Shown here piece by piece: positions 33,846 to 64,000 of a stretch of DNA of 64,000 nt (positions within the stretch are counted from its first letter, which is position 1; each line of letters starts with the position of its first letter). Under the pieces are notes generated by a model. That model saw nothing but the letters and a program-made list of their open reading frames with translations. It was not told the DNA's origin and did not search any database. Source of the DNA: Phaeosaccion multiseriatum (lineage: Eukaryota > Protista > Ochrophyta, other classes). The DNA is taken from assembly GCA_965112735.1 (NCBI GenBank), contig OZ218965.1, positions 620,001 through 684,000 on the forward strand. Direction: 5' to 3'. The position numbers were made by a program, and so were the translations under genes.

Positions 33846-35709
33846 ATCCTTGTCGACTTCGGTTCGATGCTGCCGTGCACCCTCCTTCTCCCTGACCTTG
33901 TGCGCCCCCTCGTCGAGTATCTCATTGTTGTTGATGTACAGCTCCTGCAGGTTGCGAGTCCCTCTCAGTCCTTCCGCTAAGGCCTTGGCCCCGTCGTCGC
34001 CGATGGCGTTGTCTACAAGGTACAGGCGAGTCAACACACTCACCTGCACATGAGTGGGAGTCATATGCAGCAGAAGGAGGAGGAGGAGAAGGACGAGGAG
34101 GTCAGTGGTGAATGGTTGAGACGCTGCAGGGAGGAAGGACCCTAGTGATGCGGACTAACGTACACCCCCCCCCCCCCCACCCCACCCCAAACACACACAC
34201 ACATCAGCAGCTCAACCGACCTACCCCACCCCCCTCTACCCACCTTGAGGGCCGGCCCCAGGGCTCTCGCTCCGTCGTCGCCGATCAGCTCACACGATAG
34301 GTCCACCGTCCGCATGCTGAGACGCACCTCCTCCCTAGAGCCGTGCAGGAGCACGCGCAGTACCTCTGCGAGCTTATCCATACCGGCAAGGCCCCACTTG
34401 CCGCCGTATCTCCCCTCCGCCTCAGAGCTCTCCGCCATAGAGCCCTCGCTCCTCTCGTCGTCGCCCTCCTGTCGAGGTTTGGAGGAAAGCTGGAGCATCT
34501 CCTCCTCCACTCCCTTCTGCAGGCTGTCCCTCTCCCCGGCCAGGTCGACGGATGTGTCATCCCATTTCGTCACTCGGAAGTCCGCCTTGATGTTCATCAG
34601 CCGCTGCCGCTCCTCCTCCGCCCTACGCACCATACGCCTCAGATGGTGCTGTGTGGCTGCCTCCACTGCCTGTGCCATGACGGTGCGCAGGAGGCGGTTG
34701 GCCACGAGCATGCTCAACACGGCGCTGTCCTGCGCGGCCTTGGCCTTGGGGTCCAGAGGCGGGGCTTCCTCCTCTTCTTCTTCGCCGCCTTCTTCGCGCG
34801 GATCCCTGTTCTTCCTTCCCTTCCCTCTTCTATGCGAAGCATCATCATCATCATCGTCGCTGTCGCTGTCTGTGTCGCTATCACCACCGTCCCTCTTCTG
34901 GGCTTTAGCTTCGGCGGCCTGCCTCTCTTCCTTTGCCTTCCCGTCCTCCTCCGGTTCAGCGGTCGAGTCATCGTCGGTAGGATGCGCTTGGCCTTGCAGA
35001 AGGATCATCACTCGGGAGCTGTTCTTCTTCATAGAGCCTCCGCCATCCTCCCCTTTCTCTGTTTCCGCCTGCATGAATGACTTGCCCGAGGTCGACTCTC
35101 TCGACCCCTTGAGGGCGCTGCGCAGAGGCTTAGCCTCCATGGAGCCCGGTCTGTGCAGAACCACACCCTCCTCGTCACCCGCAGGAGGGGGATCAGCATC
35201 ACTTGGCAGCTTCTCCTTCTCCTCCTCTTGCTGCTGCTGCTGCACGGCAGGCTCTGCCGCTGCGTTGGCCTCTGAAGCACTGGGGAGTACCCACGACGAA
35301 TCCTGGGTGCTGAGGTTGTAGTAGTAAGCGTTTCCCTCCTCATCCTCCAGCTCCTCCCAGTAGTCGAACTCATCGGCTTCTGTACCCTCGCCGCCGAGAG
35401 CAAGGGCCGTGGAATCGTACCCATAGCCCGATCCCCCCCAGGACGTAGCGTCGTAGCTGTAGCCTTCCCACTCTGCTTGGTACGGCTCCGTCTCAACGAC
35501 CTCTACATGCTGCCAATCCTCCTCACTGGACGCGCAGGAAAGGAGCGAGCAAAGGAGGGAACAGGTCAAGGTAAGGGAGTCCACACAGAGGAGTAGGAGG
35601 TGGTGACTCATCACCCAAAAAGTAGAGAGATTTTCACTTACCCTTCGTCGTCGTACGCCTTGTACGGCGTGATGAGGGCAAGGGATCCTACCCCCTCATC
35701 TTCATTCAT
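28086..35709 (-). CDS. Large WW-domain + RNI-like LRR + coiled-coil/Ser-rich protein, multi-exon
   Basis: WW motif [27 protein letters not shown]; LRR units [44 protein letters not shown]. The last LRR exon splices in frame (EK|gt...ag|ALDWHG) into the 29257-32253 ORF and then into the final exon ending at 28086. Confidence 0.7.
29106..29280. repeat. (CACT)n microsatellite, reading (GTGA)n on the coding strand next to a splice donor
   Basis: About 40 tetramer units seen directly. Confidence 0.95.
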
Positions 35710-45400: not shown

Positions 45401-45820
45401 CTCACCCCACTACACCGTACCCACACACACCACACCCCATCCACTGCCATCCCACACAATCCCATCCCAACCGCTGCCATCCACTGCCATCCCACACAAC
45501 CCCACCCCATCCACTGCCATCCCACACCCCTTTAGGTTCCCTCGGAGGACGCCGAGCGTGAGTGGGTTCGCATCCTCCGAGACCAAGCCAACGCCGACGC
45601 CGCGAGGTGGGAGACAGGCGAGAGCCCCGCGGGGAGTGGCTCCGCGTGGAAGCCCCCCAGTCTGGTGCGCACGACGGCCGAGCCCCGTCCGAACGCGTAC
45701 ATTCCCGACGAATTGGGCATCCCCAAGCCCTACGGGGCCCTCGCGCCGTTCAAGCCCACGGAGGCGGGCAGCACCATGCGGTTCATGCGACCACCCAACC
45801 CGCAGGAGATCGAAATCTAG
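36187..45820 (+). CDS. CCDC146: Coiled-coil axonemal protein CCDC146/MBO2, many exons
   Basis: VKNERNKYVNLIQASNQALAEMKEKIKIL, GVQLIDRNDELCILYEKAN, LEDP..RWRALEGEDP and C-terminal RTTAEPRPNAYIP..IPKPYGALAPFKP..IEI*. Confidence 0.92.
41140..41586 (+). repeat. (CCCT)n microsatellite in a CCDC146 intron (similar tracts at 38960-39047 and 51981-52263)
   Basis: Seen directly; this tract lies just upstream of an AG acceptor. Confidence 0.95.
41937..42690 (+). repeat. G-rich 29-bp intronic minisatellite, about 25 copies
   Basis: Unit GGGGTGGAGGGGTGGAAGGATAGGATAGA in tandem. Confidence 0.95.
43990..44775 (+). repeat. About 70-80-bp purine-rich intronic minisatellite, about 10 copies
   Basis: Core CATGGACTCGGAGAATGGCAGGA followed by variable (GGAGA)/(GGGGA) runs. 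Confidence 0.93.
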
Positions 45821-46281
45821 TAGTTGGAGGCGGCGGGGGTGTTGTCGTTGTAGCGGGAGGAATGAAGGGAGGGAGGAACATACATGTAGGGGGGGAGATC
45901 GGCTTTGTATTCCCGACACCAACAATCAAACTCTCGCTCACACCACACAAGCAGGGTCTATTCTCTCTCCTCTTGATTCTCGTCTCTTTCTTTTCTTCCT
46001 GCGGGAGAGATCGTACTTACGGCCTATGGTTTGCCTAAGGAGAAGGCAACGCTGCAGAAAAGGGCAGCGCTGGAAAAGGAAAGATTACAGCAGGCTAAGA
46101 GAGTTCACTCACCTCCAAGACACCACCGTTTTAGAGACACCCAAACGCCCCCTCCCCCCCCCCCTTCCACCCCAAACTACTGTCTTAGCGAGTTTGAACA
46201 TGCGCATCGTGTTGCCCTCGTCGAAACAAGGCGAATGCCGGCATCGCTGCCTCCTGCAACCTCTATCAAGTTCAGTTCTAT

Positions 46282-46406: not shown

Positions 46407-46927
46407 GAGCGTGTAGAGGCCTAACAAACTGAAACTCCTGTTCCTTACGTAAGGGCCATGCGGGTCTTACATAAGGGTGTCTTGCAGCCCAGAGGGCCCT
46501 CCCTCCCCCCCCCTTAAGTGCCTCTATCCCCGAGTTGAGCAGTTCTGGTTACGCGTCCCAGGTAGGGGTGGGTAAGGGGATTGCAACAAGGCCCTCAGCA
46601 TCTTTGGTAACATTCGTGGCTAGGTGTTTTGAGTGAGCTCTCTTAACAAAAAAAAGGAACTCCTCCTTTTTCCGTTAAAATAATAAAAGAAGAAATGAGG
46701 AAGAAAGAGGGAAAAAAAAGAAGAACGTACTAAAAGTAATTATCATTAACTCCGCCCCAACTCCTCCATCATTGTTGTCCCAACTTCTCCCTTCCCTACG
46801 TGCTTTGGCACAACGTGTCATTTGCGTCCAACGGTGTGCGCGGCATGGTCAGGCTACGCACGCTCTTATTGCTTTGTTTATCATACGTGGCGGGCTGGTG
46901 CCTTTTAAAAGCGAACAATAAGTGAGG

Positions 46928-49900
46928 ATGGATGGTGAAGGAGGGGACCACGATGCCCTGGGAGAAGTGACGCCCGGGGAGACAGCAGCAGCGGCGGCAG
47001 CCGCCGCAGCAGTAGGCAAAGGGGATGACCGGAAGACAAAGCCTCTCCTCCCCGGCCACGCCAAGAACGGAAAAGGCAGTCGTGGAGGTCCAATTGGGGT
47101 GACACAACTCTTGTGGGGGCGAGACTCTTCAGCAGCAGACGATGAACAGGAGAAAGAAGCCGTGACGTCTCCGGGCAGACAACAACGAGGCGGAATCGGC
47201 GCAGGAGTCGCGGCCTCTTCTTCTCTCGCTCCTCTGTTGGGAAGGGCTCAAGAGGTTGTTGCTGAGCTCGGCGACAAGCCCTTTGCCTTTTGGTACGATG
47301 GCAAGGGCAAAGAGGCGGAGAGGTACAGCTTCAGACGTATGTGGGATGAGGTAAGAGGGGCCGCAAGACTTGAAAAAACCCTTCAAATGCCTACTTGTAG
47401 ATATCCATCTATCCTGGCTGCTCTGTCTGCAAGTCCCAGCCTGCTACTTCTCGTCTTGCACCCTCAGCCATCCCCCTATCCTCCTGGCCTGGCTCGGCTT
47501 TGCTGTGTTTCTGCCGTATCTTTTGGGGTGCTAACTGAGTCACTGTGTTTTCTTTCTCCCCTTCGTCTCCCCCAGGCGGGCAACATTGCCTACATGCTGC
47601 GCGAGGAGTGGGGCGTGCCCAAGGGGGCCATGGTGGTGCTGTGCTACGGGCCGGGCCTGCACTTCTTCGCCGCCTTCCTGGGCTGCCTGAGAGCGGGCGT
47701 GGTGGCGGTGATGGTTTACCCGCCCGCTCCTCCGCTGGCTACGTCCCTCCCCAAGATGAGCAAGATCGTGGCGGACTGTCAGCCCCTGCTGTGCCTCACC
47801 GACTCCATCATCGCAGCTCTGCGCAGAGTGGACAGGGCCAATCCACTCTCTGACTCGCGCAAGCTGTGGCCTGCGGACCTCGACTTTAAGGCTACAGATG
47901 GGGGGCTGCTCCGGAGCTTCTTCTCCTCCTCGTCCTCAGCGAGGAGCTTTGACGAGCCGAGCATGACCGAAGAGGACCTGGCCTTCCTGCAGTACACCAG
48001 TGGCTCCACCGGCAACCCCAAGGGCGTCATGGTGACCTTTCGTGCACTCATGGCCAACGTGTACCTCATGGCGGGCCACATTGAGCAAGTCGTGCGGAGA
48101 AAGGGGGCTCGGACAAGGAAGGAGGAGGAGACGAAGGATTCGACCGCACCTGTTGGTTCACAAGAGAAGCAGCAGAACCTCAGGGGGCTGTGTCTGCAGA
48201 CGGCAGCAAGAAGGGAGGGTCTTCAGGTTTGCACCCTGCCGGCGCGAGGCCTCTCTTGGTTGCCGCAATACCATGTGAGTGAGTGAGTGAGTGAGTGAGT
48301 GAGTGAGTGAGTGCGTGAGTGAGTGAGTGAGTGAGTGAGTGAGTGAGTGAGTGCATGAGGGAGGGAACTATATCCCTTGAATGAGGGAGGGAACTGCATC
48401 CCTCTTGTTGAGAGAAAGTGGCAGATCTGGTAGACGATGCTTCTTATGGCAAGCGAGAGAAGGATCAATACACGATTGTTTGTAGCTGTATGTTGGGGGC
48501 GAAAGAGGAAGGAGGATAAGGACGCGCTCCATGCATGATATCGAGTCACAGCACAGACGTTACACCTCTCCTGTACGCCTCTTCCCCTCGTTGCTGTCCC
48601 ACCCCCCCCATCACAGGATATGGGTCTTGTGGTTGGCCTTATGGGCCCCTTCCTGACTGGCCAGTGTATGCACTACATGTCCCCCGTGAGCTTCATCAAG
48701 CGCCCCTTGCTCTGGCTGGAGCTCATCTCTCGGCACCGCGTGGAGTGGTCCGTCGCACCCGACTTCGCCTACGCCCTCTGTGCCCGCAATATGGCCAAGG
48801 TGCGCGGCACTCGCAAGGAGCCCGCTCTGGACTTGTCCAGCGTGGTGTCACTCATCAACTCAGCAGAGCCGATTCGGAGAGAGACCATTGAGAGGTTCGA
48901 AGAAGCCTTCCGCCCCCACGGCCTCTCAGACAGGTATGACGGGCGGCAGCGAAGAGCCCCCCGCTGCTCATTTGCCTTCTCCCCCCCTCTGCTTGCACCC
49001 TTTCGCTTGAGAGGGGGAAGTATTGCTCGGCCTCTCCGTCTTGTGCGCCAGACTAATACCCTCGCCTGACGTTGTCGCCTCCTTTGCTCAGGTGGTTCTC
49101 GTCGGCCTACGGCTTGGCTGAGCATGTGGCATCAGGTACGTGTCGCTCTTGTGGTGCTTGCTTACTCAATGATTGCTGCATTGTTTTGTTCTTTGTTTTT
49201 GCTGACTCTTCCACCCCTACCTTCTCTGTACTCTGTGTGTGCTCATTTGGCTCTTGTCTTCGACGGGACCAGCCTGCTCGATCGACTCTCTGTACCGCTC
49301 CTCCTCGCGGCCGGAGCTCACCAGCGTCGGCTCCCCGAGCGAGAGAGCCGACTTTGTGGACTTTCGAGTAGTTGACCCCGATAGCATGGTCGAGGTCAAT
49401 GAAGCGGGCGCGGTGGGAGAGCTGTGGATTTCCTCTCCCTCTGTCGCCGCCGGATACTGGGGCAAGCCCGAGCTTTCGAAGGAGGTGTTCCAGGGGGAGC
49501 TCTCTCTTCACGATGGGGCCGGGGGCAGTGACAGCTTGCCTCCTCGCCAGTACCTGCGGACAGGTGACTTGGGTTTTGTGGAAGAGGGGCTGCTGTATAT
49601 CTGCGGCCGCATCAAGGACCTCATCATCTTCAACGGGGTTAACCACTACCCGCAGGACGTCGAGTTCGCTGTGCAAGAGGCGTCTGACGCTGTTCGGCAG
49701 GGCTGCATTGCGGCCTTCTCCTCCGACGAGACGGGAGGGGACGGCGTGCTGGAGGTGGTGTTTGAGATCCGGCAGGAGCGAGAGAGCGAGGCCCAGGCAG
49801 TGGTGGAGGCTGCTCAAGCCGCCTTGTCGTCCTCCTTGGGTCTCAGAGCGGCGAAGGTGGTGGCCATCAAGCAGAAGACCATCCCCAAGACCACGAGCGG

Positions 49901-52900
49901 CAAGATCCGACGTCGGGCGACGAGGCAGGCGCTTCACGCCGGCGAGCTGCACATGGTGCACGAGCTCACCGAGGACCGCACTGCGATGTCACAGGTGCGA
50001 GCGAGCGGGAGTGGAGACCTCTTGCCCACCTCTTCCTTCCTTTGGCCTCTTTTCTATGTTTCTTTGGTACTTGCCTTCGCAGCCCTTTTCATCCGTGCCA
50101 TTCATTGTGCGGGGGAATCGTCTGCTGACACAGGGTTCTGCATCGAGCCTCACCCCACATGTCGTGTCCATTTCTCCCCCAACCCACACCGACAGGACCC
50201 TCCTCCTGTGAACCTTGCCAATGTGCGCTCAGCTTTCGAGGAAAGGGCTTGCTTCGTCGAAGGCGATGCCCCGGAGGGGAGAGGAGGAGGAGAAGGAGGT
50301 CTGGTCATGCGTGCTATGGAGAGCCTCGGTAGGGAGGCAAGGGTGGCCATCATCTTGGAGAAGCTCCTGGAGTTTGCCGTAGAGGTGACGCACAACGGAG
50401 ATTTGACCGCCGACGACCGCTTCATGGAGGCGGGCATGACCTCGGTGATGATGGCCGAGCTGGCGGTGATGCTCGAGGACTTTCTGGGCAGCGACAAGAC
50501 CGAAGACGGGAGCGACAAGGATTTTGAGGTTGGGGCCGACTCCTTCTTTGACTATCCGACACCCGCTCTACTCGCAGCTCACCTGGAGACGGTCCTGTTT
50601 GGAGAAGAAGAGGAGGACGACGCTTCCGTTGACGAACTGCCTCGCTCCATTCCTGGGGTGCCTTTTTCTGACGGTAGCAGCGGCGATATTGCAGTCATTG
50701 GGATGGCCTGTCGGTTCCCCGGCGGTTGCAATAGCCCGGAAGAATTCTGGGCGAAGCTGTGCAATGAAGAGGACTGCGTCACCGATGCACCCCTTGAGCG
50801 AGGCTTGGGAAAAGGAGTGAGAGGTGCGTTTCTAGCCTGTCTCCACGAGGCTTGCAAATGTTTGTCTTAAAGGGCATGTACAGCTCTTGCTGGGCGCTTC
50901 TTTCCTTGCATCTGAGTCCTACTCACCCTGTTTTGGACGTTTCTCCTCTCCCCGTGATGAGATCAGGTGGCTTCATCGACGGTGTCGAAGCGTTCGACAA
51001 CGCATTCTTCGGCATGTCCATCGCCGAGGCGGAGGCCCAAGACCCCAACCAGCGCATTATGCTCGAAGTGGCGTATGAGGCTCTGCACAGAGCCGGCTAC
51101 GAGGGCCGACGCAGGCTTGAAGGTCACCGAGTCGGCGTGTTTGTGGGCGCTGCAGGGAGTGACTGGCCCGCTCTGCTGCGTGAGAGCGCGGATGGCGGCG
51201 TTTCCCCCAGTGCCTACACGTTGGCAGGGGTAAGCAGAGCATGTTTCGCTGGCCGCATTTCGCACACACTCGGCCTTGAAGGTCCATGCGAAAGCGTAGA
51301 TGCAGCATGTTCGTCGGCCCTGGTGGCCCTGAGCAACGCGTGCAATAGTCTGAAACTGAGGAAGTGCAGCTCTGCCGTCGTTGGCGGGGTCAACCTGCTG
51401 CTCCACGACCAAGGCTTTGGTGGCCTAGCCAGTGCGGGACTTCTGTCGAAGGAAGGGTGAGTGTGCTCTTGCAGCTCTTGTGGGTTCTACAGTCTTTCTT
51501 CCAAAGCGCCTTTTCTATTCCTTCTCGTCCCTTGCTTGGACACTGATCCACCCCCCACTCCGCTTCCTGTGTCCCGTCTCCTGCTGCAGGTACTGCAAAT
51601 CTTTTGACGCGGCCGGGGACGGCTACGTGCGCAGTGAGGGCAGCGGGGCCGTCGTGCTGAAGTGCCTGCCGGACGCCATCAAGGACGGGGACAACATCCT
51701 CTCCGTCATCAAGGTAGCGGCTGTCAGCCACAACGGCGTCAGCACTTCTCTGTCTGCCCCCAAGGGAGCCGCTCAAGAGAGCTTGGCGAGGAGCGCCCTG
51801 CGGCAGGCAGGGTGCGAGGGGAGAGAAGTGGGCTACGTCGAGGCCCACGCCACGGGAACGGTCATGGGCGATGCCATCGAAATGGGTACGTTGAAGGAGG
51901 CAAAAGGGGGTTAAAGTAGGGGCAGTGTTGTTGGACCATCATTGTGAAGCTCTCTGATATATACAAAATCTGACCCCTCTTCCCTCCCTCCCTCCCTCCC
52001 TCCCTCCCTCCCTCCCTCCCTCCCTCCCTCCCTCCCTCCCTCCCTCCCTCCCTCCCTCCCTCCCTCCCTCCCTCCCTCCCTCCCTCCCTCCCTCCCGCCC
52101 TCCCTCCCTCCCTCCCTCCCTCCCTCCCTCCCTCCCTCCCTCCCTCCCTCCCTCCCTCCCTCCCTCCCTCCCTCCCTCCCTCCCTTCCTCCCTCCCTCCC
52201 TCCCTCCCTCCCTCCCTCCCTCCCTCCCTCCCTCCCTCCCTCCCTCCCTCCCTCCCTCCCTCCTTCACGCACTCACGCACGCACTACGTCGCGTGATACT
52301 CCTTAGGCGCACTCAAGGCAGCGTTCACCCGCAACAGGCCTGATGCCTCCCCCCTTGTAGTGGGCACTGTCAAGACTACTCTAGGCCACATGGAAGGGGC
52401 GTCAGGGATGGCTCAGCTCATCAAGGCCATCTTGGTAGTACAACACCGAGAGGCTCCTGCCAACCTACACCTGAAGGAGGTCAACCCTAAGCTGAAGCTG
52501 GAGGGCGTGCCCGTCACGCTGCCCACCCGAAGAACGCCCCTCTCTTCCTCCTGCTCCGACGGCTCGACGCTGCTCGCAGGGGTGAATTCCTACGGTGTTG
52601 GCGGTTTCAACGCCCACATCGTCTTGGGCAGCTATGGCGGCATGAGGCCCGAAGGCGCAGCAGAGAGAGTGGGCACCCCTTGGCAGGGGTTCCCCTCGTC
52701 GCGAGAGTTTCCCCTCCCGAAGAGTGCAACACCAGCAGCACACGATTGCGAGGGTCCTGTATCTGCTCCTCCCCCAGCTGGAGACGCCCTCTCACAGCTG
52801 CGCGAGACTCTCTCTGCTCTCTCCCCAGAGGATCGACGCGTTGCTCTCCTGGAAGCGCTCAAGGCGACTGTGCTGAAGTGTGTTGATGCAGACATGCCCC

Positions 52901-55900
52901 CGCTGGACGACAATGTGCCCTTGATGGAGGCAGGCCTGGATTCGATAGCACTCGTGGAGGTGCGGAATCGCCTTCAAACTGATTTGGGGGTGACAGCCAC
53001 CGCCGATGTGCTGTTTGAGTATCCCAGCGTGGCGGAGCTTGTGGGCTGGCTTGATGGCGAGGTAATGGGGAGGGCTGCCACAGACCCAATGCGAGGTTTG
53101 CGCCCCACCTCGGCTTCGCCTCAAGGCATGCGAGCTCCGCTGGCGGTGGTGGGCATGGCGTGCCGCTTTCCAGGAGGAGTGACTTCGCCCCAAGGTTTCT
53201 GGAGCATGCTTAGCACGGGATCGGACTGCATCTCTACAGTTCCAGCAGACAGGTGGGGAGGCGGCTCGAAGGAGTGGCGAGGAGGCTTCATAGAGGGCGT
53301 CCACCTCTTCGACAACAAATTCTTTGGTATTTCGTCAGCGGAAGCGGAAAGCATGGACCCCAACCAGCGCGTGCTGCTGGAGGTGGCCTTCGAGGCGCTG
53401 CACAGTGCCGGCTATGAGAAGAACAGTCTTCACAAGAGCGAGACAGGGGTTTTTGTCGGCTGCGCTGGAAGCGATTGGCTGCAGGCCAAAGCAAGCTCAG
53501 GAGCTGGTGAGGCGAGCGAGGGCGTGTACGCGGCGTCAGGAGCCTCCATGTCGAATTTGGCCAACCGAGTTTCCTACGCACTGGGGTTGAAGGGGCCCAG
53601 CTCAACTGTAGACACGGCGTGCTCCTCTTCCTTGGTCGCCCTGGACAACGCCTGCAGCAGCCTGCGATTGGGCAAGTGTGACGCAGCTGTCGTCGGAGGA
53701 GTGAACCTGCTTCTCAGCGAGGCGCCCTTCAAGCTCCTTTCCTCAGGAGGGTTTCTCTCGCCAAACGGGTGAGTGCGTGAGTGTGCGTGAGGGAGGAGGA
53801 GAAAGAGGGGGCGAGTAGGGAGGAAGAAAGGAGGAGAGAAAGGGAGGGACGGGGTGAGGGAGGGAGGGAGGGAGGGAGGAGAGGGAGGGAGCGGAGGGAG
53901 AAAGTTCACGAGTATGATGCCTCTGCAGGTGAAATCCAGTACTGAAGTCGGTAGACACCTGGTCACGCACCACCGTTCGCTCAGGACGGCAGAGTGAGAG
54001 CCTTCATTCTTCTTCCGTTTTCTTAGCTAAATCTCCCTTGTTTCCCCCTTCCGTCCTTCCTCTCAAGGCAATGCAAAACATTTGACAAGTCAGCCAACGG
54101 CTATGTCAGAGGCGAGGGGTGTGGAGCAATCGTGCTGAAGCGCCTAGACCACGCCCTTGCCGACAACGATGAGGTGCTGGCTGTCCTGCGAGGCTCGGCT
54201 GTGAACCATAATGGGCCCACCGCGCGGATGACGGCTCCAAACCCTGGTGCTCAAAAGGAGCTCATCACAGACGCCTTGATCGACGCCGGGCTATCTCCGA
54301 ACGACGTCAGTTTCGTGGAGGCGCACGGCACGGGCACGTCTCTCGGCGACCCCATCGAGATGAGCGCTCTCCGAGGAGTGTTTGCCCATGACCGCGATGA
54401 AGCGAAGCCTTTGATTGTAGGGGCGCTCAAGACAAATATTGGGCACTTGGAGGGTGCAGCAGGGATTGCCGGACTCATCAAAGCCGTGCTGATGGCGCAG
54501 CACAAGACCGCTCCACCAAATTTGCACCTCACGGAGCAGAATCCCGAGCTTGACACCGAGGGGTTTGCAGTCGTACTCCCATCCTCCTTGACCCCCTTAC
54601 CGACCAACTCCGACGGCTCCGTGGTGGTCGGGGTCAGTTCTTTCGGATTCGGAGGTACCAATGCACACGCAGTGCTCAGCAGCTACGAACCAACGGAGGG
54701 TGAGGACGGCGGAGAGACCTTGTTGCAGCAGCGTGAGCACCAAAGCCACAAAATCGCTCCAGTGGCATTCTTGTTCACCGGACAGGGCTCGCAGTACGTG
54801 GGTATGGGCAGGGAGCTGTACGAGAAGGAGGGCGTGTTCCGCGAGTGCGTGCAGCGGTGCAGTAGGCTGCTCATGGAGCGGGCCTGGCTGGACAAGTCTG
54901 TGGTGGAGCTCATGTACCCTGCCGCCGCTGAGGACGGGGGGGAGGAGGAGACTGCACAAGCGCTGCTGAAGGAGACACGCTACTGCCAGCCGTGCCTGTT
55001 TGTGCTGGAGTACGCCCTGTGTGAGCTGTGGAAGTCGGAGGGCGTGGAGCCGTCCATGGTGATGGGCCACAGCCTGGGCGAGGTGGTGGCGGCGTGCGTG
55101 GCTGGCGTCATGTCGCTGGAGGACGGGCTGATGCTGTCCACCAAGAGAGGAGCCGCCATGCAGGCCTGCCCCGAGGGCAAGGGAGTGATGTTCGCAGTGA
55201 CAGCGGGCCGCGGGGCTACCTTGGCGGGCATCGCTGCTGCGAGGCTGGCAGGCGAAGTGGTGCTGGCGTCGTCGAATGGACCGAGCGCGAGCGTGATCTC
55301 TGGAGCTCGCAGCGCTGTGGACAAGGTCGTGGAGAAGCTCACGGCAGATGGGGTGGGCTGCAAGGCCCTGGAGGTGTCGCACGCCTTTCACTCTCCTCTG
55401 ATGGAGCCCGCTGTACGTGCGCTGGAGGAGGTTCTGAGGCAGGTGTCATTCAGCGCCCCACGCATTCCCCTGGTGTCCAACGTGTCGGGTGAGGTGGTCA
55501 AGGCGGAGGAGGTGACGCAGGCGACGTATTGGGTGCGACACATGCTGTCGCCAGTGCTGTTCGCAGAAGGCATCCACACGCTGGTGGAGCACTGGATGGG
55601 AGACGGGAGAGGGGCTGACCTGAGCATCGTTGAGGTGGGCCCCAACCCTATGCTGAGCAGTATGGGAGCCAAGTGCGAGCGTCGCGAGGGGCTGGCTTGG
55701 ATCTCTTCACTCGCGCGCGGGAAGAGCTCCGAGGATTCGTTTGGAGCGGCTCTGGGTAGAGTAACGGGGCCGGAGCATCTTGAGCTTTATCCGACTCGCC
55801 GATCATTTCCTTGGTACAAGCCTCCGCTGGCGTTTATGCCAAGTGGTGAGATGGTCCAGGAGGGAGACGGAATGCGGCTCATCAGCCCATTCTCGCCTCA

Positions 55901-58900
55901 CCTCAAGGACCTTCTCAAGGACCATGCCGTCAACAATGTGGTGATCATTCCGGGGGTGACGTACATTGAAGTGGGCGTCGTGGCTGCTCTAGGAGGAAGA
56001 CAGCTCGGGGTGGAGGAGCAGGTGGTCCTGCAAGAAGCCAGCTTTGTGGTGCCACTGGAGATTGAGGGCTTTCAACACACCGGCACGGACCAATCGCAAA
56101 GTCGCAACACTATTATCTGTGACGGCCTGAGTGCGCTGCACGGGAAAGATGGAGACATGGAATTCTCCGGCGATGCTGACGGTGACCGTGGCACCACCGC
56201 GAGGATGGCCCACGTGTCTGTCACTGAGCGAACCGAGCCGCGTGAAACGCTCGATGTGGAGGGTATCAAAGGGAGAGTAGGGGAGGACATGTCCAGTGAC
56301 GTGTACGTGGTAATGGCCAACGCCAACTTCTGCTTCGGCCCTCGATTCAAGCGAAACACGCGTATGTACGAAAAGAGCGGAGAGGTACTTGCGGTCGTGC
56401 GCGCCTTAGACTCGGAGCTTTGCGAGCCGTGGGAGGAAACGAGTTTTGTTCTACACCCTGCGGTCCTCGACAGTGCAACGCACTCCATTTTCCGCGCAAT
56501 CCCAAGTCAGCTCTTTAACTCGAGTGGTGGAGCTCCGTTCTTGCCCGTTGGCTTCGACGAGGTGGTAGTCTCTGCTCCGATTACGGAAGAGAGAGTATGG
56601 GTGCACACAAGGCTCACTAAAGTGGAGAAAGGGGGCAACATCATCAAGTTTGACATCCGCATTGCCCACTACGAGAGCAAGCTGGTGCTTGTCGAGATGC
56701 GAGGATTCCGCGTGCAGAGGGCGAGAGGCTTTGCGCCTGTCAATCCTCTTCGTCGCGCAATCTACACGCTGGAATGGCAGGAGGAGATCCCTGATACTCA
56801 CACTACTGAGCAGGCGGCTCGACAGAAATGGCTGGTCCTCGCTGCGCAGGAGGAGAGAGACGGCGAGACTTCAATGACTGCGGCAGTGCGGCGCTCTGTT
56901 CCGGAGGGCGTGGATGTTCACACTCGGCATGGAGGGATGAGCGGCTCATGGAAGGATGATGCTCTTCTCCTTGGAGAGGAGGACTGGACTCGAGTCTTGT
57001 ACATGCTGATCCCCGGAGATGGCGACGAAGACGCAAAAGAGGGCCTGCAAGCTCGAGCGGCCTACGCCCTGATGACTCTACTCAGGAGCCTGTCCACTGC
57101 GTCGAGTGCGCCGCTGACGGTTTTGACAAGAGGCGTCCAAAGCGGCGAGGACTGGCGTGACAGCTGGGTGATAGGTTTGGTGCGGACTGCGAGGATGGAG
57201 CACCCTTCCATGCAGATTGGTGTGGTGGACCTGAGCGACAGGGAGGCCCAAGACAGCGAGCTTGCCTTGGGCCTGGCCTTCCCCGCTACCACAGATGATG
57301 TGTGGGTACGCGATGGGCAGTGCTTGACGCCTCAGCTTTCACACCAGGCCCTGCAGCTTCCCTTCTCACTTGACTTGAAGGCAAGAGGCAGCATTGTCAA
57401 CGCTTTCGCCCTTGCTGACGATGTGAATGTGGGCAAGCATGAGCCCCTCGACCCGACCGGTAGCTATGTGGAGGTGGCAGTGAGAGCTGTTGGGCTGAAC
57501 TTCCGGGACGTGCTGAATGTGCTGGACACGTACCCTGGCGATCCTGGAGATCCTTGCTCCGAGTTTGCCGGGGAGGTGACCAGTGTGAGAGAAGGCTCAC
57601 GTTTCAGCGTCGGCGACGCTGTGTTTGGCTTTGCGGATACGGGATGTTTGCGCAGTCATGTGGCGACGAGTGACGCGTGCCTGGCCGTGATGCCATCCGT
57701 ATTGAGCTTCGAGCAGGCAGCAGCACTTCCTATGGTGTGCTTGACGGTACAGAAGGCCTTCCATGACCTTAAGGCGGGTGAGAAAGTGTTGATCCATGCT
57801 GCAGTTGGTGGTGTGGGCATTGCTGCCATTCAGTACGCTCAGCGTGTGGGCGCCGAGGTGTACGCGACTACCGGTGCTGCTGTGAACCACAACTTCCTCC
57901 GGAGCTTGGGGGTGGAGCACATTGCGTCATCAAGAGACACAGAGGCGTTCAAGCAGTCCATGGGTGAGGTGAAGGTGGATGTGGTGCTCAACTCTCTCAG
58001 TGAGGATTTCATTTCCTTCTCACTGGACATGCTGACAGAGGGAGGCAGATTCATCGAGATTGGCAAGCGAGGCGTGTGGAGTCATGAGCAGATGCACACC
58101 ACCCGGCCCGACGTGACGTACGAGCTGCTGGCTCTGGACACCGTGATCGAGGCTGACTTCTCGGCGGGGGAGCCTGGCTGGATTGGCGACGAGCTGCAGC
58201 ATCTTGCTGACGAGTGCATGTCTGGGGCTACGCAGCCATTGCCCGTGACGCCCTTCGACATGCGAGGCGAGACGCCCAAGGCCATGGTGTTTATGATGGA
58301 AGCGCAGCACATCGGCAAAGTGGTGATGACCAACCCCTCATATGGTGTGCCAGTCGTGTCGGATGGCACGTACGTCATCAGCGGCGGTTTGGGGGCTCTC
58401 GGCCTCGTGACGGCTCAGCACCTTGCGTCAAGGGGTGCTCGTCACCTGGTGCTGCTGTCCAGGAGTGGGAAGGTCGCCGAGAGTATGACCGAGCAGTGGC
58501 AGCAGCTTCAGAAGACATCCCATTTGACCATCCATACTAGGACCTGTGATGTCGGTGACGCCGAGGCCCTTCGGACATGCTTGGGGACCATGCTTCCTCT
58601 GCTTCCCCCTGTGCGCGGTGTGGTGCATGCTGCGGGGGTGCTGGATGATAAGCTACTGGGAGAGCAAACGGTGGAGAGCGTGACGAACGTGTTCCGACCC
58701 AAGGTGCAGGGGGCGGTGAACTTGCACGAGCTTTCTTTGGCTTGGTTGAAGGAGGAGGAGCGCGCTGCCGGCCTTGACTTCTTCGTGTGCTTCACATCAA
58801 TGGCCGGAGTACTGGGCAACGCTGGACAGGCCAACTACGCTGCGGCAAATGCCGCTGTGGACGGGCTGATGCGGCACAGGCGACGCCTCGGGCTGGCAGG

Positions 58901-61900
58901 GACGTCATTGCAGTGGGGGCCGTGGGCTGATGTGGGTATGGCCGCTGAGCTCGATATCGTTCAAAAGCAGTTGGAGCTTGCGGGTGTGGGCACGGTGTCA
59001 GCTGAGCTGGGCATGGCTGCCTTAGATGCCGCTGCGATGCCGTCAGCGTCTTTGGGTGATGTGACTGTCCTGCCTGGCATGGACTGGGCCAAGTTTGCAG
59101 ACAGTGTGGGGGCGTCCCACAGTCAGCCTCTACTGTCAAGGCTAGTCTCAAGGGCCGGAGCAGGAGCAGGGGGGGTGAGAAACACCGTGCTCAACGAACA
59201 AGTGCACCAGGAGCTGTTGGAGCTGTCCCCTGGAGACAGAAAACACGTGGTGAGCCTTGCGGTGATGGACATCGCAAAGGACCTGATTGGGGAGGGTGTC
59301 GAAGAGCTGGACGCCTCCACTTCGCTCATGGAGGCCGGTCTTGACTCGTTATCGACGGTAGATATGCGCACCCGACTGCAGGCTCGCTTTGGAGTGAATG
59401 TGACCAGCGACGTGCTCTTCTCGTATCCTACGGTAGCGGCATTAGCGACGTGGGTCGAAGAGGCAGTGTTGGGAGAGGAAACAGACGCTGCCAGAGGTCG
59501 CTCAGCTGGCGGTGCGACATCTAACCTGGATCAAGTGGACTCAGCAGTCCCCTTGGCCGTTGTGGGTATGGCCTGCCGCTTCCCTGGCGGCGCAAGCAGC
59601 CCCGAGGCCTTCTGGTCCATGCTCTCTGCGGGTACAGACTGTATTCGAGAGGCCCCTGTCAACCGCTGGGCAGACGATGGGAATCAGAAGCAGTGGCACG
59701 GGAGCTTCATTGACGGAGTGGAGATGTTCGACAATGCCTTCTTCGGCATCTCTGCGGCCGAGGCGGGTGCCATGGACCCTCATCAGCGCGTCATGCTGGA
59801 GGTGGGGTACGAGGCTCTGCACAGGGCGGGATACCGCAAGGATACACTACACGGCAGCAACACCGGTGTGTTCGTGGGTGTGTCCGGCAGCGAGTGGGGC
59901 TCAGTGGGTGCAGATGAGGAGCGAAGCGCATACTCCGTCATGGCCACGTCAAACGCAAGTCCTGCCAACCGGCTGTCTTACGTGCTGGGGCTGAGGGGCG
60001 CTAGCTTCAGTGTAGACACTGCCTGCTCGTCATCATTGGTGGCACTGGACGCTGCATGCAACAGCTTGAGGCTGGGTAAGAGTAACCTCGCCGTGGTGGG
60101 CGGCGTAAACTTGCTTCTAGGCACCGCAGGCTTCGAAGGTCTCGCAGCTGGGGGATTTCTTTCACCTGACTGGTAAGTGTGCGTCGTGCCTTGATGAGAG
60201 ACTCATGTATCCACACGATGACGGCGCCCAAGTTGTAGTTTTTGTATCTTCCTGGGAGCAAACTACATCACCCTCATAGCCCCCGCGGCCCACAAACGGA
60301 ATGTCTTGTTTTCATTTGCTTGTACCCTGCTGTAATCAAGGCGCTGCAAAACCTTCGATGTATCGGCCAACGGTTACGTTCGGGGCGAGGGCTGCGGCGC
60401 TGTGGTGCTGAAGCGACTGGATGATGCAGAGGCCGATGGCGACGTCATTCTCGCACTTGTGAATGGATCCTCCGCGAACCACAACGGAAAGGGCGTGCGA
60501 TACACCGCCCCGAGCCCGTTGGCCCAGCAGGAGGTGATGAATGAGGCTCTTGCGGAGGCCGCCTTTGACGGCTTAGACATGCACTACGTTGAGGTGCACG
60601 GCACAGGCACCTCTCTCGGTGACCCAATCGAAATGAGCGCTTTGAGGGCCGTGTACGGCAAGGGTCGGGAGGAAGCGAGGCCTCTGGTGGTCGGAGCGGT
60701 GAAGACCAATATCGGGCACCTAGAGGGGGCTTCCGGAATAGCTGGCGTCATCAAGGCTGTGTTGGTGCTTCAGCATGGAGCTGCCCCTCCGAATCTCAAC
60801 ATGAGCAAGCTCAATCCGGAGCTGCCACTGGAAGGCTTTCCAGTGACTCTACCTTCCGCCATGGTCTCCCTGAGTTACGAGAGCGGGGAGCGACGTATCG
60901 CTGCAGTCAGTTCCTTCGGTGCTGGTGGTGCCAATGCGCACGCAGTGCTCAGCAGCTTCGGACCACCGGTGGTTGAGAGGGGCGAGGCTTTACTGCAGCT
61001 GGATGGGCAGCAAAGCAAGAAGCGTTCACCGGTGGTGTTCTTGTTCACTGGTCAGGGATCGCAGTACGTGGGCATGGGCAGGGAGCTGTACGAGAAGGAG
61101 GGCGTGTTCCGCGAGTGCGTGCAGCGGTGCAGTAGGCTGCTCATGGAGCGGGCCTGGCTGGACAAGTCTGTGGTGGAGCTCATGTACCCTGCCGCCGCTG
61201 AGGACAGGGGGGAGGAGGAGACTGCACAAGCGCTGCTGAAGGAGACACGCTACTGCCAGCCGTGCCTGTTTGTGCTGGAGTACGCCCTGTGTGAGCTGTG
61301 GAAGTCGGAGGGCGTGGAGCCGTCCATGGTGATGGGCCACAGCCTGGGCGAGGTGGTGGCGGCGTGCGTGGCTGGTGTCATGTCGCTGGAGGACGGGCTG
61401 ATGCTGTCCGCCGAGAGAGGAGCCGCCATGCAGGCCTGCCCCGAGAGCAAGGGAGTGATGTTCGCAGTGAGGGCAGGCAAGGAGGCGACTTTGGCAAGCA
61501 TCGACGCTGCGGGCGGGGCAGGTGAGGTGGTGCTGGCGTCGTCGAATGGACCGAGGGCGAGCGTCATCTCTGGAGCTCGCAGCGCCGTGGACAAGGTGGT
61601 GGAGAAGCTCACGGCAGATGGGGTGGGCTGCAAGGCCCTGGAGGTGTCGCACGCCTTCCACTCTCCTCTCATGGAGCCCGCTGTACGTGCGCTGGAGGAG
61701 GTTCTGAGGCAGGTGTCATTCAGCGCCCCACGCTTTCCCCTGGTTTCCAACGTGTCGGGTGAGGTGGTCAAGGCGGAGGAGGTGACGCAGGCGACGTACT
61801 GGGTGCAACACATGCTGTCGCCAGTGCTGTTCGCAGAAGGCATCCACACGCTGGTGGAGCACTGGATGGGAGACGGGAGAGGCGCTGACCTGAGCATCGT

Positions 61901-64000
61901 TGAGGTGGGCCCCAACCCTGTGCTGAGCAGTATGGGAGCCAAGTGCGAGCGTCGCGAGGGGCTGGCTTGGATCTCTTCCCTCACGCGCGGGAAGAGCTCG
62001 GTGGATTCGTTTGGAGCAGCACTGGGCAGTGTAACGGGGCCGGAGCATCTTGAGCTTTATCCGACTCGCCGATCATTTCCTTGGTACAAGCCTCCGCTGG
62101 CGTTTATGCCCAGTGGTGAGATGGTCCGGGAGGGAGACGGAATGCGGCTCATCAGCCCCTTCTCGCCTCACCTCAAGGACCTTCTCAAGGACCATGCCAT
62201 CAACAATGTGGTGATCATTCCGGGGGTGACGTACATTGAAGTGGGCGTCGTGGCTGCTCTAGGAGGAAGACAGCTCGGGGTGGAGGAGCAGGTGGTCCTG
62301 CAAGAAGCCAGCTTTGTGGTTCCACTGGAGATTGAGGGTTTCCAACAGGCCGGCACGGACCAGGCGCAAAGCCGCCATACAGTGATGTGTGCCGGGATGA
62401 GTGCCCTCCACGCGGCAGATGGAAGCATGCAGTTCTTTGGAGGTGCCACGGGCGACAAGGGCACCACGGCAAGAATGAAGCACGTGTCTGTCTTGGAGCG
62501 AAGTACGGCGCGTGCTTCGCTGCACGTGGAATCCATTCGAGCTAGAGTTGGCGAGCAGGACGTATCGAGTGAGGTCTACAAGACTTTCGCTTACGCCGGC
62601 TTCCAGTGCGGCCCCCGCTTTCAGCGGACCCGCCACATGTACAGAGGGGACGGAGAGGTTCTGTCAGTCGTATGTGCCATGGACGAGGAGCTGTGCGAGC
62701 CGTGGGAGATGAGGGGTTTTGCTCTGCACCCCGCGGTGCTGGACAATGCTACCCATGCCATCCTGCAAGCGCTGCCAAAGAAGCTGCTCAAGGAGGGGGG
62801 GAGCTCTCCATTCCTACCCGCTGGCTTTGACGAGGTGATCGTTTCCGCCTCCATGACGGGAAAGAATGTGTGGGTGCACACGAAGCTGCGTGAGGTCCAG
62901 TCAGTGGCGGACAGCGCAAAGTTCAACGTGGTGATTGCAGACTTCGACAGCAAGGAGGTGCTCGTGGAGATGCGGGGCTTCCGCGTGCAGCGGGCGAGGG
63001 TCTTTGTGCGCGTCAGCCCCGTTCGTCGTGCAATGTACGCATTGGAGTGGCAGGCTGCTGAACCTTCTACACAGGAGGAGGCCCCTGGTAGTGATACTGA
63101 CCCTGCTGAGGCGGCGGCGCCACAGAAGTGGCTGGTGGTTATTCCACAGGACGAGAGGGAGGGAGAGACTGCAATCATTGCTGCAGTGCAGCGCTGTGTT
63201 CGGGAGAACGTGCAGGTACACACTCGATATGGGGGGGTGGACGCCTCTTGGGATGATAGTGCTCTTCTTCTTGGAGAGGACGAGTGGGCTCGAGTCTTGT
63301 ATGTGCTGATACCCGGAGCTGGCGAGGAAGAAGCAGAAGGGTTCCAGCAAGCACGAGCGGCCTACGCTCTGTTATCGCTACTCAGGAACCTGTCCACTGC
63401 GTCGAGTGTCCCGCTGACAGTCTTGACGAGAGGCGTCCAAAGCGGCGAGGACTGGCGTGACAGTTGGGTGACTGGGCTGGTGCGGACTGCGAGGATGGAG
63501 TGCCCTTCCATGCAGATTGGTGTGCTGGACCTGAGTGACAAGGAGCCCCTAGACAGCGAGCTTGCCTTAGGCTTGGCCTTCCCTGCCACTGCAGAAGATG
63601 TGTGGGTACGCGATGGGCAGTGCTGGACGCCTCAGCTTGCGCACCCAGCTTTGGCTCTGCCGTTTTCCCTGGAGCTTAAGGCAAGAGGTAGTATAGCCAA
63701 TGCCTTTCTCCTTCGCGATGATGTTGATGTTGGCAAACATCGTCCTCTCGACCCGACCGGTAGCTATGTGGAGGTGGCGGTGAGGGCTGTTGGGCTGAAC
63801 TTCCGGGACGTGCTGAATGTGGTGAACATGTATCCTGGCGACCCTGGCGATCCCTGCACCGAGTTTGCCGGCGAAGTGGTCGGTGCGGAAGGAAAGTCTT
63901 GCTTCAGTGTCGGGGACGCAGTGTTTGGCTTTGCGGACGGAGGATGTTTGCGCAGTCATGTGACGACGAGTGATGTGTGTCTGGCCGTGATGCCGGCCGT
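46928..64000 (+). CDS. Multimodular type I polyketide synthase, 3'-truncated by the window: FAAL-like - ACP - KS - ACP - KS-AT-DH-ER-KR-ACP - KS-AT-DH-ER...
   Basis: Adenylation motifs FLQYTSGSTGNPKGV, SWLPQYH|DMGL, YGLAE, YLRTGDLG, GRIKDLII, PKTTSGKIRR. ACPs GMTS, GLDSI, GLDSL. Three KS (DAACSS/DTACSS, EAHATGT/EAHGTGT/EVHGTGT, GHMEG/GHLEG). AT GHSLGE and HAFH; DH HAVNNVVIIP; ER IHAAVGGVG; KR GGLGALG, AGVLDD, YAAAN. The frame resumes at 60341 and appears open to the window end. Confidence 0.96.

Follow-up and report, generated by a model that had tools for sequence, protein, structure and literature searches.

Among the closest described systems are CpFAS1 and CpPKS1 of Cryptosporidium parvum, protist megasynthases that load through an N-terminal acyl ligase-ACP unit and in which non-iterative KS-AT-DH-ER-KR-ACP modules elongate a preformed long-chain fatty acid; their genes are intronless, every module carries an AT, and a C-terminal reductase releases the chain (PMC2995488, PMC6568194). 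The multimodular type I PKSs of algae reach MDa size, some of them with an N-terminal ligase, and evolve through module duplication and loss of the integrated AT; the multimodular forms surveyed were almost all fully trans-AT, and very few PKSs were found in heterokonts (Shelest et al. 2015, PMC4661987). In the ochrophyte Nannochloropsis, PKS-Clade II contains AMP-ligase, ACP, KS, AT and KR domains together with transmembrane helices; it is single-module, needs separate elongases, and has a function that is proposed only, namely the incomplete extension of C14-18 fatty acids giving rise to mid-chain oxygen (Balzano et al. 2019, PMC6872974). Finally, the Pls/PosA polylysine-type synthetases of bacteria make homopoly(amino acids) and carry, after an A-T unit, a tail in which three pairs of transmembrane (TM) helices, six in all, separate three soluble repeats; in the characterised cases this tail polymerises carrier-bound monomers (TIGR02353, PMC10522769).

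The locus considered here was found in Phaeosaccion multiseriatum, in a stretch of 64,000 nucleotides (hereafter, the window; positions 620,001 to 684,000 of contig OZ218965.1). Gene prediction from DNA confirmed that window positions 46928-64000 (forward strand) are the 5' half of one gene, which spans contig positions 666928-700283, ending 16.3 kb beyond the window. Its full domain order (Pfam, NCBIfam) is FAAL-type ligase-ACP; KS-ACP; KS-AT-DH-ER-KR-ACP twice; KS-AT-KR-ACP; KS-DH-ER-KR-ACP; KS-ACP; membrane tail. We consider it to be a single nuclear megasynthase gene with a predicted product of ~10,240 residues (~1.1 MDa), which would act as a hybrid cis-AT/AT-less modular type I polyketide (fatty-acid-elongating) synthase releasing its chain at the membrane; to this explanation as a whole we assign a probability of about 0.7. 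It is a known protist enzyme type in a new form, with mixed cis-AT/AT-less modules and a Pls-like end.

Three AT-less modules, uneven reduction and the Pls-like membrane end distinguish the predicted protein from CpFAS1 and CpPKS1, with which it shares the loading unit; no NAD-binding or reductase match follows the last ACP, where the Pls-like tail is situated instead. Unlike the algal PKSs of the above survey (PMC4661987), it has a mixed cis-AT/AT-less form, and its genome, which is of heterokont type, yields at least 121 KS matches. The host is an ochrophyte-type alga, in agreement with the sequence-only reading. The similarity to Nannochloropsis PKS-Clade II is drawn by description. The best overall module matches (33-40% identity) are to bacterial FAAL-primed cis-AT PKSs from cyanobacterial, myxobacterial and mycobacterial lipid lines; these share the KS-AT-DH-ER-KR-ACP order and the logic of FAAL fatty-acid loading but differ in being intronless, in having an AT in every module and in releasing the chain through a TE, a reductase or a sulfotransferase-type domain. 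Among eukaryotes, the only named relative found was P0041, a partial PKS of Chrysoparadoxa australica (40% identity), where a ligase, an ACP, an AT-less KS module and a KS-AT-DH module follow in the same order. The KS of P0041 group with those of the present genome, apart from bacterial KS; P0041 itself is a partial, unnamed gene model.

Gene model and loading unit

In the gene model, 14 exons separated by 13 GT-AG introns give a coding length of 30,726 bases (10,241 codons, no stops), with splice sites and start codon being predictions from DNA (Table 1). The initial model with 12 introns had 30,951 bases (a multiple of three), and the removal of an in-frame 225-base intron gave the present length. 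A further in-frame intron, within exon 2 (48050-48272), was considered and rejected, having no convincing donor, and is retained as a charged insertion. ATG 46928, with an in-frame stop at 46919-46921 just before it, is a reasonable, if unproven, start codon.

The frame is preserved through all 13 introns of the predicted splice model, and every large exon begins midway through one KS and ends midway through the next, meaning that the modules cannot be separate genes. This bears out the sequence-only reading, in which one spliced gene continues past the window with three KS and three ACP domains inside it: Pfam places every domain listed in that reading where it had been put, on the forward strand, and no stop or frameshift interrupts the downstream part. 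Exon 10 itself extends to contig position 686457. The genome had been described as intron-rich; this gene, with 13 introns across 30.7 kb of coding DNA, is poor in introns for its size. The conserved KS intron falls at the codon preceding a (C/T)(K/A)xF(D/A) motif. Introns recur at this position at 53769-54067 and 60173-60340, both inside the window, and farther along the gene in KS4, KS5 and KS6, and most KS matches genome-wide likewise stop at Pfam position ~222.

As for the surroundings, ~6 kb of satellite repeats form the 5' flank, where housekeeping genes had been supposed. The absence of a visible cluster was correctly noted for the 5' side and holds for both sides: no biosynthetic Pfam match occurs among the ORFs of either flank, the only match of any kind being a WW domain at 34142-35611.

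Table 1. Features of the predicted gene within the window (window positions)
Feature	Position	Strand	Content and basis
Exon 1	46928..47350	+	Putative ATG, low-complexity N-terminus, start of acyl-AMP ligase domain; in-frame stop just upstream; donor gag/GTAAGA at 47351
AMP-binding loader		+	Pfam E 3.8e-28 plus further pieces
Exon 2	47576..48274	+	N-terminal part of acyl-AMP ligase (FAAL-type); adenylation motif TSGSTGNPKG; Pfam AMP-binding (E 3.8e-28) begins exactly at this exon
Exon 3	48617..48933	+	Middle part of ligase; Pfam; best NCBIfam matches are FAAL families; splice sites guided by P0041
Exon 4	49092..49135	+	44-base mini-exon encoding WFSSAYGLAEHVAS, part of ligase; matches conserved YGLAE motif of P0041; flanks CAG/ and /GTACGT
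Exon 5	49273..50823	+	Ligase C-terminal subdomain (to ~49956), loading ACP, KS1 start; Pfam AMP-dom_DIP2-like, PP-binding, ketoacyl-synt; NCBIfam fatty acyl-AMP ligase, 154.7 bits
Loading ACP	~50364-50586	+	Pfam PP-binding; GMTS replaces usual GxDS
Exon 6	50967..51456	+	KS1 core with active-site Cys (DAACSS); Pfam ketoacyl-synt E 5.8e-45
KS intron	51457..51589	+	Phase 2; all KS of the gene share its position
Exon 7	51590..51885	+	KS1 continued, first catalytic His (EAHATGT)
Exon 8	52307..53768	+	KS1 end; second His, in GH of KTTLGHMEG
Exon 8, continued		+	AT-less linker, ACP1 (52864-53053), KS2 N-half from 53137; Pfam
Exon 9	54068..60172	+	Single 6.1-kb exon: KS2 C-half, AT2 (GHSLG, HAFH), DH2, ER2, KR2 (LDD), ACP2, KS3 N-half; Pfam, 15 families
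Exon 10, in-window 3.66 kb	60341..64000	+	KS3 C-half, AT3, DH3, ER3 start; Pfam
Module 1	KS1 50685-52474; ACP1 52864-53053	+	Pfam; no AT
Module 2	KS2 53137-54531; AT2 54768-55590; DH2 55863-56724; ER2 57468-58326; KR2 58365-58932; ACP2 59262-59457	+	Pfam
Module 3	KS3 59550-60804; AT3 61035-61932; DH3 62133-62997	+	Pfam
ER3	from 63768, running off the window	+	Pfam

All domain scans were performed exon by exon, so family scores are split and lie under full-length cut-offs, as is the case for the ligase families. On the largest ligase exon, NCBIfam FAAL models reached 154.7 bits and the top CoA-ligase model 112.8 bits, and the best PDB relatives of the ligase include FadD23, FadD32, FadD28 and a chain named Fatty Acyl-Adenylate Ligase. 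Thus, the nearest relatives are FAALs and not acyl-CoA ligases or amino-acid A domains. The carrier partner of a FAAL is provided by the architecture, with an ACP fused immediately behind the ligase and encoded by the same exon (Pfam), and the FAAL-type loader with an ACP that the sequence-only reading had described is upheld. Most likely, the ligase would activate a free fatty acid as an acyl-adenylate and hand the acyl group to this first ACP.

Module composition and predicted chain chemistry

Domain E-values as low as 1e-60 to 1e-65 (Pfam) exclude chance matches. As expected of a modular type I PKS, the predicted polypeptide carries several modules, and all six KS have the Cys-His-His triad in (T/A)ACSS, E(A/V)H(G/A)TGT and GH(L/M)EG. 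A carrier follows the loader and every module: seven PP-binding matches were found, six with G(L/M)DS and one, the loading ACP, with GMTS. The NADPH motif of ER, the catalytic motif of KR and the serines of the ACPs are likewise present; the LDD motif of KR2 (within HAAGVLDDK) is missing from KR4.

Integrated ATs, each with GHSLG and HAFH, occur in modules 2, 3 and 4 only, and compared with modules 2 and 3, module 5 looks like a clean AT deletion. The gene is thus neither a cis-AT PKS, in which every extending module would have its own AT, nor a trans-AT PKS, in which none would. The expectation of fully reducing modules 2 and 3 with malonyl-type ATs proved right (HAFH in AT2 and AT3, LDD in KR2), and the cis-AT label suits modules 2 to 4 but not the AT-less modules 1, 5 and 6. 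Module 1 (KS-ACP) lay inside the range that had been read, and its lack of an AT went unmentioned there.

The six KS modules would add one malonyl-derived C2 unit apiece, with modules 2 to 4 using their own malonyl-type ATs and modules 1, 5 and 6, being AT-less, presumably served by a neighbouring or free-standing AT. A simple maker of saturated chains is at odds with the reducing domains, which are reduced to a KR in module 4 and missing from modules 1 and 6. Module 1 is predicted to leave an unreduced keto group, modules 2, 3 and 5 to reduce fully, module 4 to leave a hydroxyl and module 6 a 3-keto group. With every module acting a single time, the starter would be extended by 12 carbons, and oxygen would sit at C3, C7 and C13.

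It is also conceivable, though in our opinion unlikely, that the gene encodes a modular elongase whose AT-less KS-ACP modules (1, 6 and perhaps 5) pass the chain on without condensing, yielding fewer added carbons and keto groups, e.g., a very-long-chain fatty acyl chain carrying a hydroxyl. Bacterial trans-AT PKSs offer well-known examples of KS that do not elongate. Besides the three modules without AT, such a possibility agrees with KS1 and KS6 forming a lineage of their own, separate from KS2 to KS5, and with a conserved variant in KS6 (RTASFA in place of the usual RCKTFD). However, KS1 and KS6 retain the Cys and both His, which are usually lost in non-elongating KS0, and a KS that never condenses would have no purpose in the compact FAAL-ACP-KS-ACP-tail paralogues that exist in the genome.

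The C-terminal membrane domain

Annotation of the downstream part, which the sequence-only reading had called for, revealed six modules in all and an unforeseen end: Pfam and NCBIfam detected no TE, reductase, sulfotransferase or NRPS release domain after the last ACP but a Pls/PosA-like membrane domain. TIGR02353 matched two tail exons, scanned separately, with E 1.8e-17 and 1.8e-5 (62.9 and 23.3 bits), far under its curated cut-off of 423 bits, and sub-threshold matches also occurred in 13 of 14 control bacteria. The best outside relatives of the tail are A-T-Pls proteins, which themselves score 583-734 bits on this model, and the tail aligns to Pls family members with E 1.9e-39. With P0001, a full member of the family, it shares 27% identity across 350 residues (BLASTP, E 2e-19), and the alignment covers the TM-proximal KWLVxGxY and LLGA motifs, so the similarity extends beyond hexapeptide repeats. 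By these comparisons, the tail is homologous to the polymerising end of the bacterial Pls/PosA polylysine-type synthetases. Its predicted topology is also that described for Pls/PosA: the hydropathy scan gave six helices, one pair ahead of each of three hexapeptide-like regions, for which left-handed beta-helix repeats are predicted. Unlike in Pls/PosA, the preceding domains are not amino-acid A and T domains but a KS-ACP PKS module, and the donor would be a long acyl chain rather than a diamino acid.

The structure model of the tail is moderately confident (pLDDT 62.6). A Foldseek search of PDB with a partial model gave no significant match (E 0.011 or worse), the weak ones being hexapeptide acyltransferases and gamma-carbonic anhydrases, and the sequence search found no solved structure of a Pls tail. 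To our knowledge, no catalytic residues have been defined for Pls-type domains, so the activity of the tail cannot be read from its sequence. Our literature search found no published PKS-Pls fusion; a single preprint notes, in a dinoflagellate, an NRPS_term_dom gene with no function assigned.

Fused to the last ACP, the tail most likely acts in release, moving the chain from that ACP onto a nucleophile at a membrane. The product would most likely be a very-long-chain acyl chain with oxygen substituents, delivered to an acceptor there; the long-chain lipid of the sequence-only reading likewise stays an inference. A more remote scenario makes the tail a true polymerase, with the hydroxylated acyl chain as both donor and acceptor and an oligo- or polyester extruded through the membrane as a cell-wall or surface lipid polymer. 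The polymerising activity of characterised Pls/PosA tails (PMC10522769), the free hydroxyl that module 4 would leave as a possible nucleophile and the predicted integral membrane nature of the tail speak for it. We nevertheless regard it as improbable: the tail has diverged far from the polymerases (20-27% identity), no member of its eukaryotic branch has been studied, and handing the chain once to a separate acceptor requires fewer assumptions.

Going beyond our preferred reading of a membrane-releasing synthase, one might speculate, with low odds, that the product is a mid-chain-oxygenated very-long-chain lipid monomer of ~C26-C30, which the tail couples or polymerises across the membrane, and that the paralogues form a combinatorial toolkit. 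Under such a proposal, oxygen would lie 13 carbons from the carboxyl end (compare the long-chain hydroxy acids and diols of some ochrophytes), coupled monomers would build a surface or cell-wall lipid polymer, and the toolkit would consist of roughly 20 paralogues.

Paralogues, selection and implications

The genome contains ~20 similar first modules, as well as dozens of Pls-type tail matches in roughly 20-25 places, and the tail and C-terminus are 70-82% conserved across three paralogues. Relative to its closest paralogue, the gene is under purifying selection (dN/dS 0.27, dS 0.22, 1,326 codons). Recent module duplication within the gene was rejected, with each KS being nearer to a KS of another gene than to its neighbours. 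Distinct module types recur in paralogous genes at 94-98% identity, which suggests evolution by whole-module exchange.

That the locus is non-functional as a single gene (a decaying family copy, unexpressed, or several shorter transcription units) is very improbable: the family is huge and recently duplicated, and one paralogous tail has an in-frame stop, but here the entire reading frame is free of stops, all introns are GT-AG and frame-keeping, catalytic motifs are intact, dN/dS is low, and introns within KS would make adjacent exons useless unless spliced together.

We know of almost no ligase-primed modular synthase from protists whose product is known and of no studied PKS that uses a Pls-type (polylysine-synthetase-derived) release domain. 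Heterokont algae have been thought poor in such synthases, and the present genome holds a very large family of them. The gene described here is an intermediate between cis-AT and AT-less design, in line with the way in which algal PKSs have been proposed to lose their ATs. If its tail does transfer or polymerise lipid chains at the membrane, it would represent a new route of polyketide-lipid release and export, with a possible bearing on the resistant surface lipids of algae.

Domain order and gene model of the PKS gene

On the plus strand of the window, stop-to-stop open stretches from 46922 to the end carry PKS domains in Pfam searches, with E-values reaching 1e-60 to 1e-65. An AMP-binding ligase in three pieces and an ACP come first, followed by module 1, which consists only of KS1 and a second ACP with no AT between them, then by module 2 (KS2-AT-DH-ER-KR-ACP) and, at the end of the window, by the beginning of module 3 (KS3-AT-DH and the first ER residues). 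Both GHSLG and HAFH were found in AT2 and AT3, and KR2 contains HAAGVLDDK with the LDD motif within it. The domains and motifs that a sequence-only reading had named for 46928-64000 were therefore borne out by Pfam and by motif inspection of AT2, AT3 and KR2; the KS-ACP-only build of module 1 was all that this reading had left out.

To the window (C16:620001-684000, in an assembly of 67.1 Mb and 22 contigs), 40 kb of downstream sequence was added, and profile scans were run exon by exon. Here, module 3 is completed by ER-KR-ACP; module 4 (KS-AT-KR-ACP) is without DH and ER, and its KR4 is without the LDD motif; module 5 (KS-DH-ER-KR-ACP) is without AT; and module 6 is KS-ACP. When the four large exons were aligned, AT proved to be cleanly deleted from module 5, as compared with modules 2 and 3. 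The previous cis-AT designation thus holds for modules 2-4 but not for modules 1, 5 and 6, which are devoid of AT. Domain scans found no PKS release domain in the approximately 800 residues after module 6; this tail matches NCBIfam TIGR02353. The gene that had been seen to run out of the window in its third module hence comes to six KS modules, with a Pls-like tail instead of a PKS release domain.

A splice model was built from GT-AG rules and frame continuity, with a partial PKS protein from Chrysoparadoxa australica guiding the ligase region. It predicts 14 exons with 30,726 coding bases (10,241 codons) and continues past the window with 0 remaining stops, which answers the concern that a stop or frameshift might interrupt the gene downstream. 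The start codon, the splice junctions and expression are predictions. A phase-2 intron interrupts all six KS at the identical codon, so that the large exons run from the C-terminal half of one KS to the N-terminal half of the next. Since every large exon bridges two successive KS, a string of small separate genes is excluded, and the single spliced gene proposed earlier stands. Exon 14 and the C-terminus show 70-82% identity in three paralogues, supporting the acceptor site and the stop. The introns also hold microsatellites, listed in the table.

Features of the PKS gene and its 5' flank (window numbering, continued beyond 64000 for the exons)
Feature	Position	Strand	Remark
WW-domain ORF, 489 residues	34142-35611	-	nearest Pfam-recognisable coding sequence 5' of the PKS gene
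(CCTC)118	41128-41601		satellite, 5' flank
29-base unit x25.6	41940-42681		satellite, 5' flank
73-base unit x10	43995-44773		satellite, 5' flank
Exon 1	46928-47350	+	predicted start
Exon 2	47576-48274	+	predicted
(GTGA)20	48275-48353		intronic, directly at donor site
Exon 3	48617-48933	+	predicted
Exon 4	49092-49135	+	predicted 44-base mini-exon; encodes conserved YGLAE motif
Exon 5	49273-50823	+	predicted
Exon 6	50967-51456	+	predicted
Exon 7	51590-51885	+	predicted
(TCCC)71	51981-52263		occupies most of a 421-base intron in KS1
Exon 8	52307-53768	+	predicted
(AGGG)14	53841-53900		inside KS2 intron
Exon 9	54068-60172	+	predicted
Exon 10	60341-66457	+	predicted
Exon 11	66589-70878	+	predicted
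Exon 12	71033-76258	+	predicted
Exon 13	76377-79006	+	predicted
Exon 14	79208-80280	+	predicted; stop codon 80281-80283

Cys and the two His are kept in each of the six KS, the sequence around GHSLG and HAFH is near-identical in the three ATs, and the DH domains have their catalytic His as well as the DxxxH motif. The NADPH motif is found in the ER domains, the catalytic Ser/Tyr/Asn in the KR domains and the serine in all ACPs. The closest paralogue, C2:1355588-1359595, shares 91% DNA identity; comparison over 1,326 codons, stop-free in both copies, gave dS 0.22, dN 0.058 and dN/dS 0.27. The PKS gene is under purifying selection. Overall, we conclude that it is real and intact, and very probably functional.

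Loader and membrane tail

FAAL models were the best or near-best NCBIfam matches for all three ligase pieces, and in the largest ligase exon PRK12476 reached 154.7 bits, against 112.8 bits for the top-scoring CoA-ligase model. Among the nearest solved structures are the FAALs FadD23, FadD32 and FadD28, as well as a chain named Fatty Acyl-Adenylate Ligase. Such matches, together with the ACP fused behind the ligase, lead us to read the N-terminus as a FAAL-type loader, so that the FAAL-type loading domain suggested previously appears well supported.

The tail matches TIGR02353 (Pls/PosA terminal domain) with E-values of 1.8e-17 and 1.8e-5, at scores far under the 423-bit cut-off, and 13 of 14 control bacteria give weak TIGR02353 matches too. 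According to a hydropathy scan, a helix pair precedes each of its three hexapeptide-like regions. This layout is the topology given for Pls and PosA: their six helices form three pairs, C1-C3 lie in between, and the published model has three left-handed beta-helices packed together (PMC10522769). The sole matches of a word search with the tail were A-T-hexapeptide proteins of 1,311-1,480 residues (best E-value 1.9e-39); three of these reach 583-734 bits on TIGR02353 and are, therefore, true family members. In BLASTP, the tail aligned to the best of them with 27% identity over 350 residues, taking in helix-proximal motifs besides the hexapeptide turns. A predicted structure of the tail, covering its first two-thirds, had a pLDDT of 62.6, and this partial model gave only weak PDB matches, to hexapeptide acyltransferases; a sequence search found no solved structure of a Pls-type tail. 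Given the scores below cut-off, the control matches and the weak model, we class the tail as a divergent homologue, outside the curated TIGR02353 family, that would work like a Pls end.

In a paralogous giant PKS (C1:2427000-2433300, minus strand), one in-frame stop interrupts the fifth transmembrane region of a Pls-like tail that is otherwise well conserved. The copy could be a pseudogene, or the stop could reflect an intron that was missed or an error in the assembly.

PKS family, host and surroundings

With an E-value threshold of 1e-20, at least 121 KS matches were counted in the genome; about 20 of them are KS1-type first modules with an extra intron at Pfam position ~59. Dozens of Pls-type tail matches lie at some 20-25 genomic places, and 1 kb of module 3 has about 40 genomic copies of 69-91% DNA identity, mostly 78-91%. 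In a tree of 58 KS N-terminal exons, the 46 sequences from this genome and two from Chrysoparadoxa separated from the sampled bacterial cis-AT KS. KS1-KS6 belong to six different KS types, KS1 and KS6 grouping with the first KS of compact FAAL-ACP-KS-ACP-tail genes. KS6 (exon 13, from 76377 onward) has RTASFA versus RCKTFD in other KS, a conserved variant common to the last KS of three paralogues. The nearest relatives of KS1-KS4 are 94-98% identical and sited in other genes, not next door, which speaks against recent duplication within the PKS gene. From these types and relatives, the gene resembles a compact ligase-KS-ACP...KS-ACP-tail frame whose two ends enclose a reducing-module cassette. 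The family seems to grow by duplication and exchange of whole modules, a pattern that agrees with and extends the algal PKS model of module duplication and AT displacement (PMC4661987).

In three KS matches (Pfam positions 2-252), at C1:2406174-2406965, C3:381710-382501 and C8:1933227-1934018, the intron present in almost every other KS of the family is missing. One of them was placed in the tree and forms a long branch, so these three may represent a different KS type.

An intronless plastid-type dnaK was found with equal scores on two small contigs, at C18:92678-94450 and C21:26761-28533; the assembly may contain two copies of the plastid genome. The best named relatives of this dnaK are Vaucheria, Chrysoparadoxa and Gonyostomum (66-68% identity), and Chrysoparadoxa is also the only named eukaryotic match of the PKS module. 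Both results support the ochrophyte-like host assumed before; the database searched with dnaK and the PKS module held no close sequenced relative. As for the 5' surroundings, the sequence-only reading was correct in that no cluster is visible, but its housekeeping genes gave way, at 40000-46000, to satellite DNA with a strong G skew, which extends over about 6 kb immediately 5' of the PKS gene and holds many spurious long ORFs. No biosynthetic domains were found in the long ORFs on both flanks.

Proposed working and known systems

Domain logic suggests that the ligase loads a fatty acid on the PKS and that, read colinearly, six condensations would add 12 carbons. Oxygen would stay at three positions of an otherwise saturated chain: as keto groups at C13, owing to the missing KR of module 1, and at C3, from module 6, and as a hydroxyl at C7, from module 4. 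A C16 starter would thus give a C28 chain. From ACP6, the chain would then be transferred by the tail to a nucleophile located at a membrane. In the simplest reading, this is a single transfer to a separate acceptor; polymerisation by the tail via the C7 hydroxyl that module 4 would provide seems less likely.

In logic, the nearest studied systems are CpFAS1 and CpPKS1 of Cryptosporidium, in which a ligase-ACP unit serves as loader, reducing modules act non-iteratively and a reductase releases the product (PMC2995488, PMC6568194), whereas the present gene has a Pls-like tail in place of the reductase. By lineage, the closest relatives noted are the "PKS-Clade II" enzymes of Nannochloropsis, likened here by drawn architecture: AMP-ligase, ACP, KS, AT and KR together with transmembrane helices. 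For these enzymes, a role was proposed in setting the oxygen in the middle of the chain of long-chain hydroxy acids and diols (PMC6872974). Our literature search found no paper on a PKS ending in a Pls-type domain; a preprint reports a dinoflagellate NRPS_term_dom gene, leaving its function unassigned.

By its predicted domains, the PKS gene encodes a modular PKS of the ligase-primed protist kind, in which cis-AT and AT-less modules are mixed and a putative Pls-like membrane release domain stands at the end. Ligase-primed modular PKSs are already known from protists, and the mixed AT state and Pls-like release would make this gene a variant of them, with an architecture that is unusual and testable.
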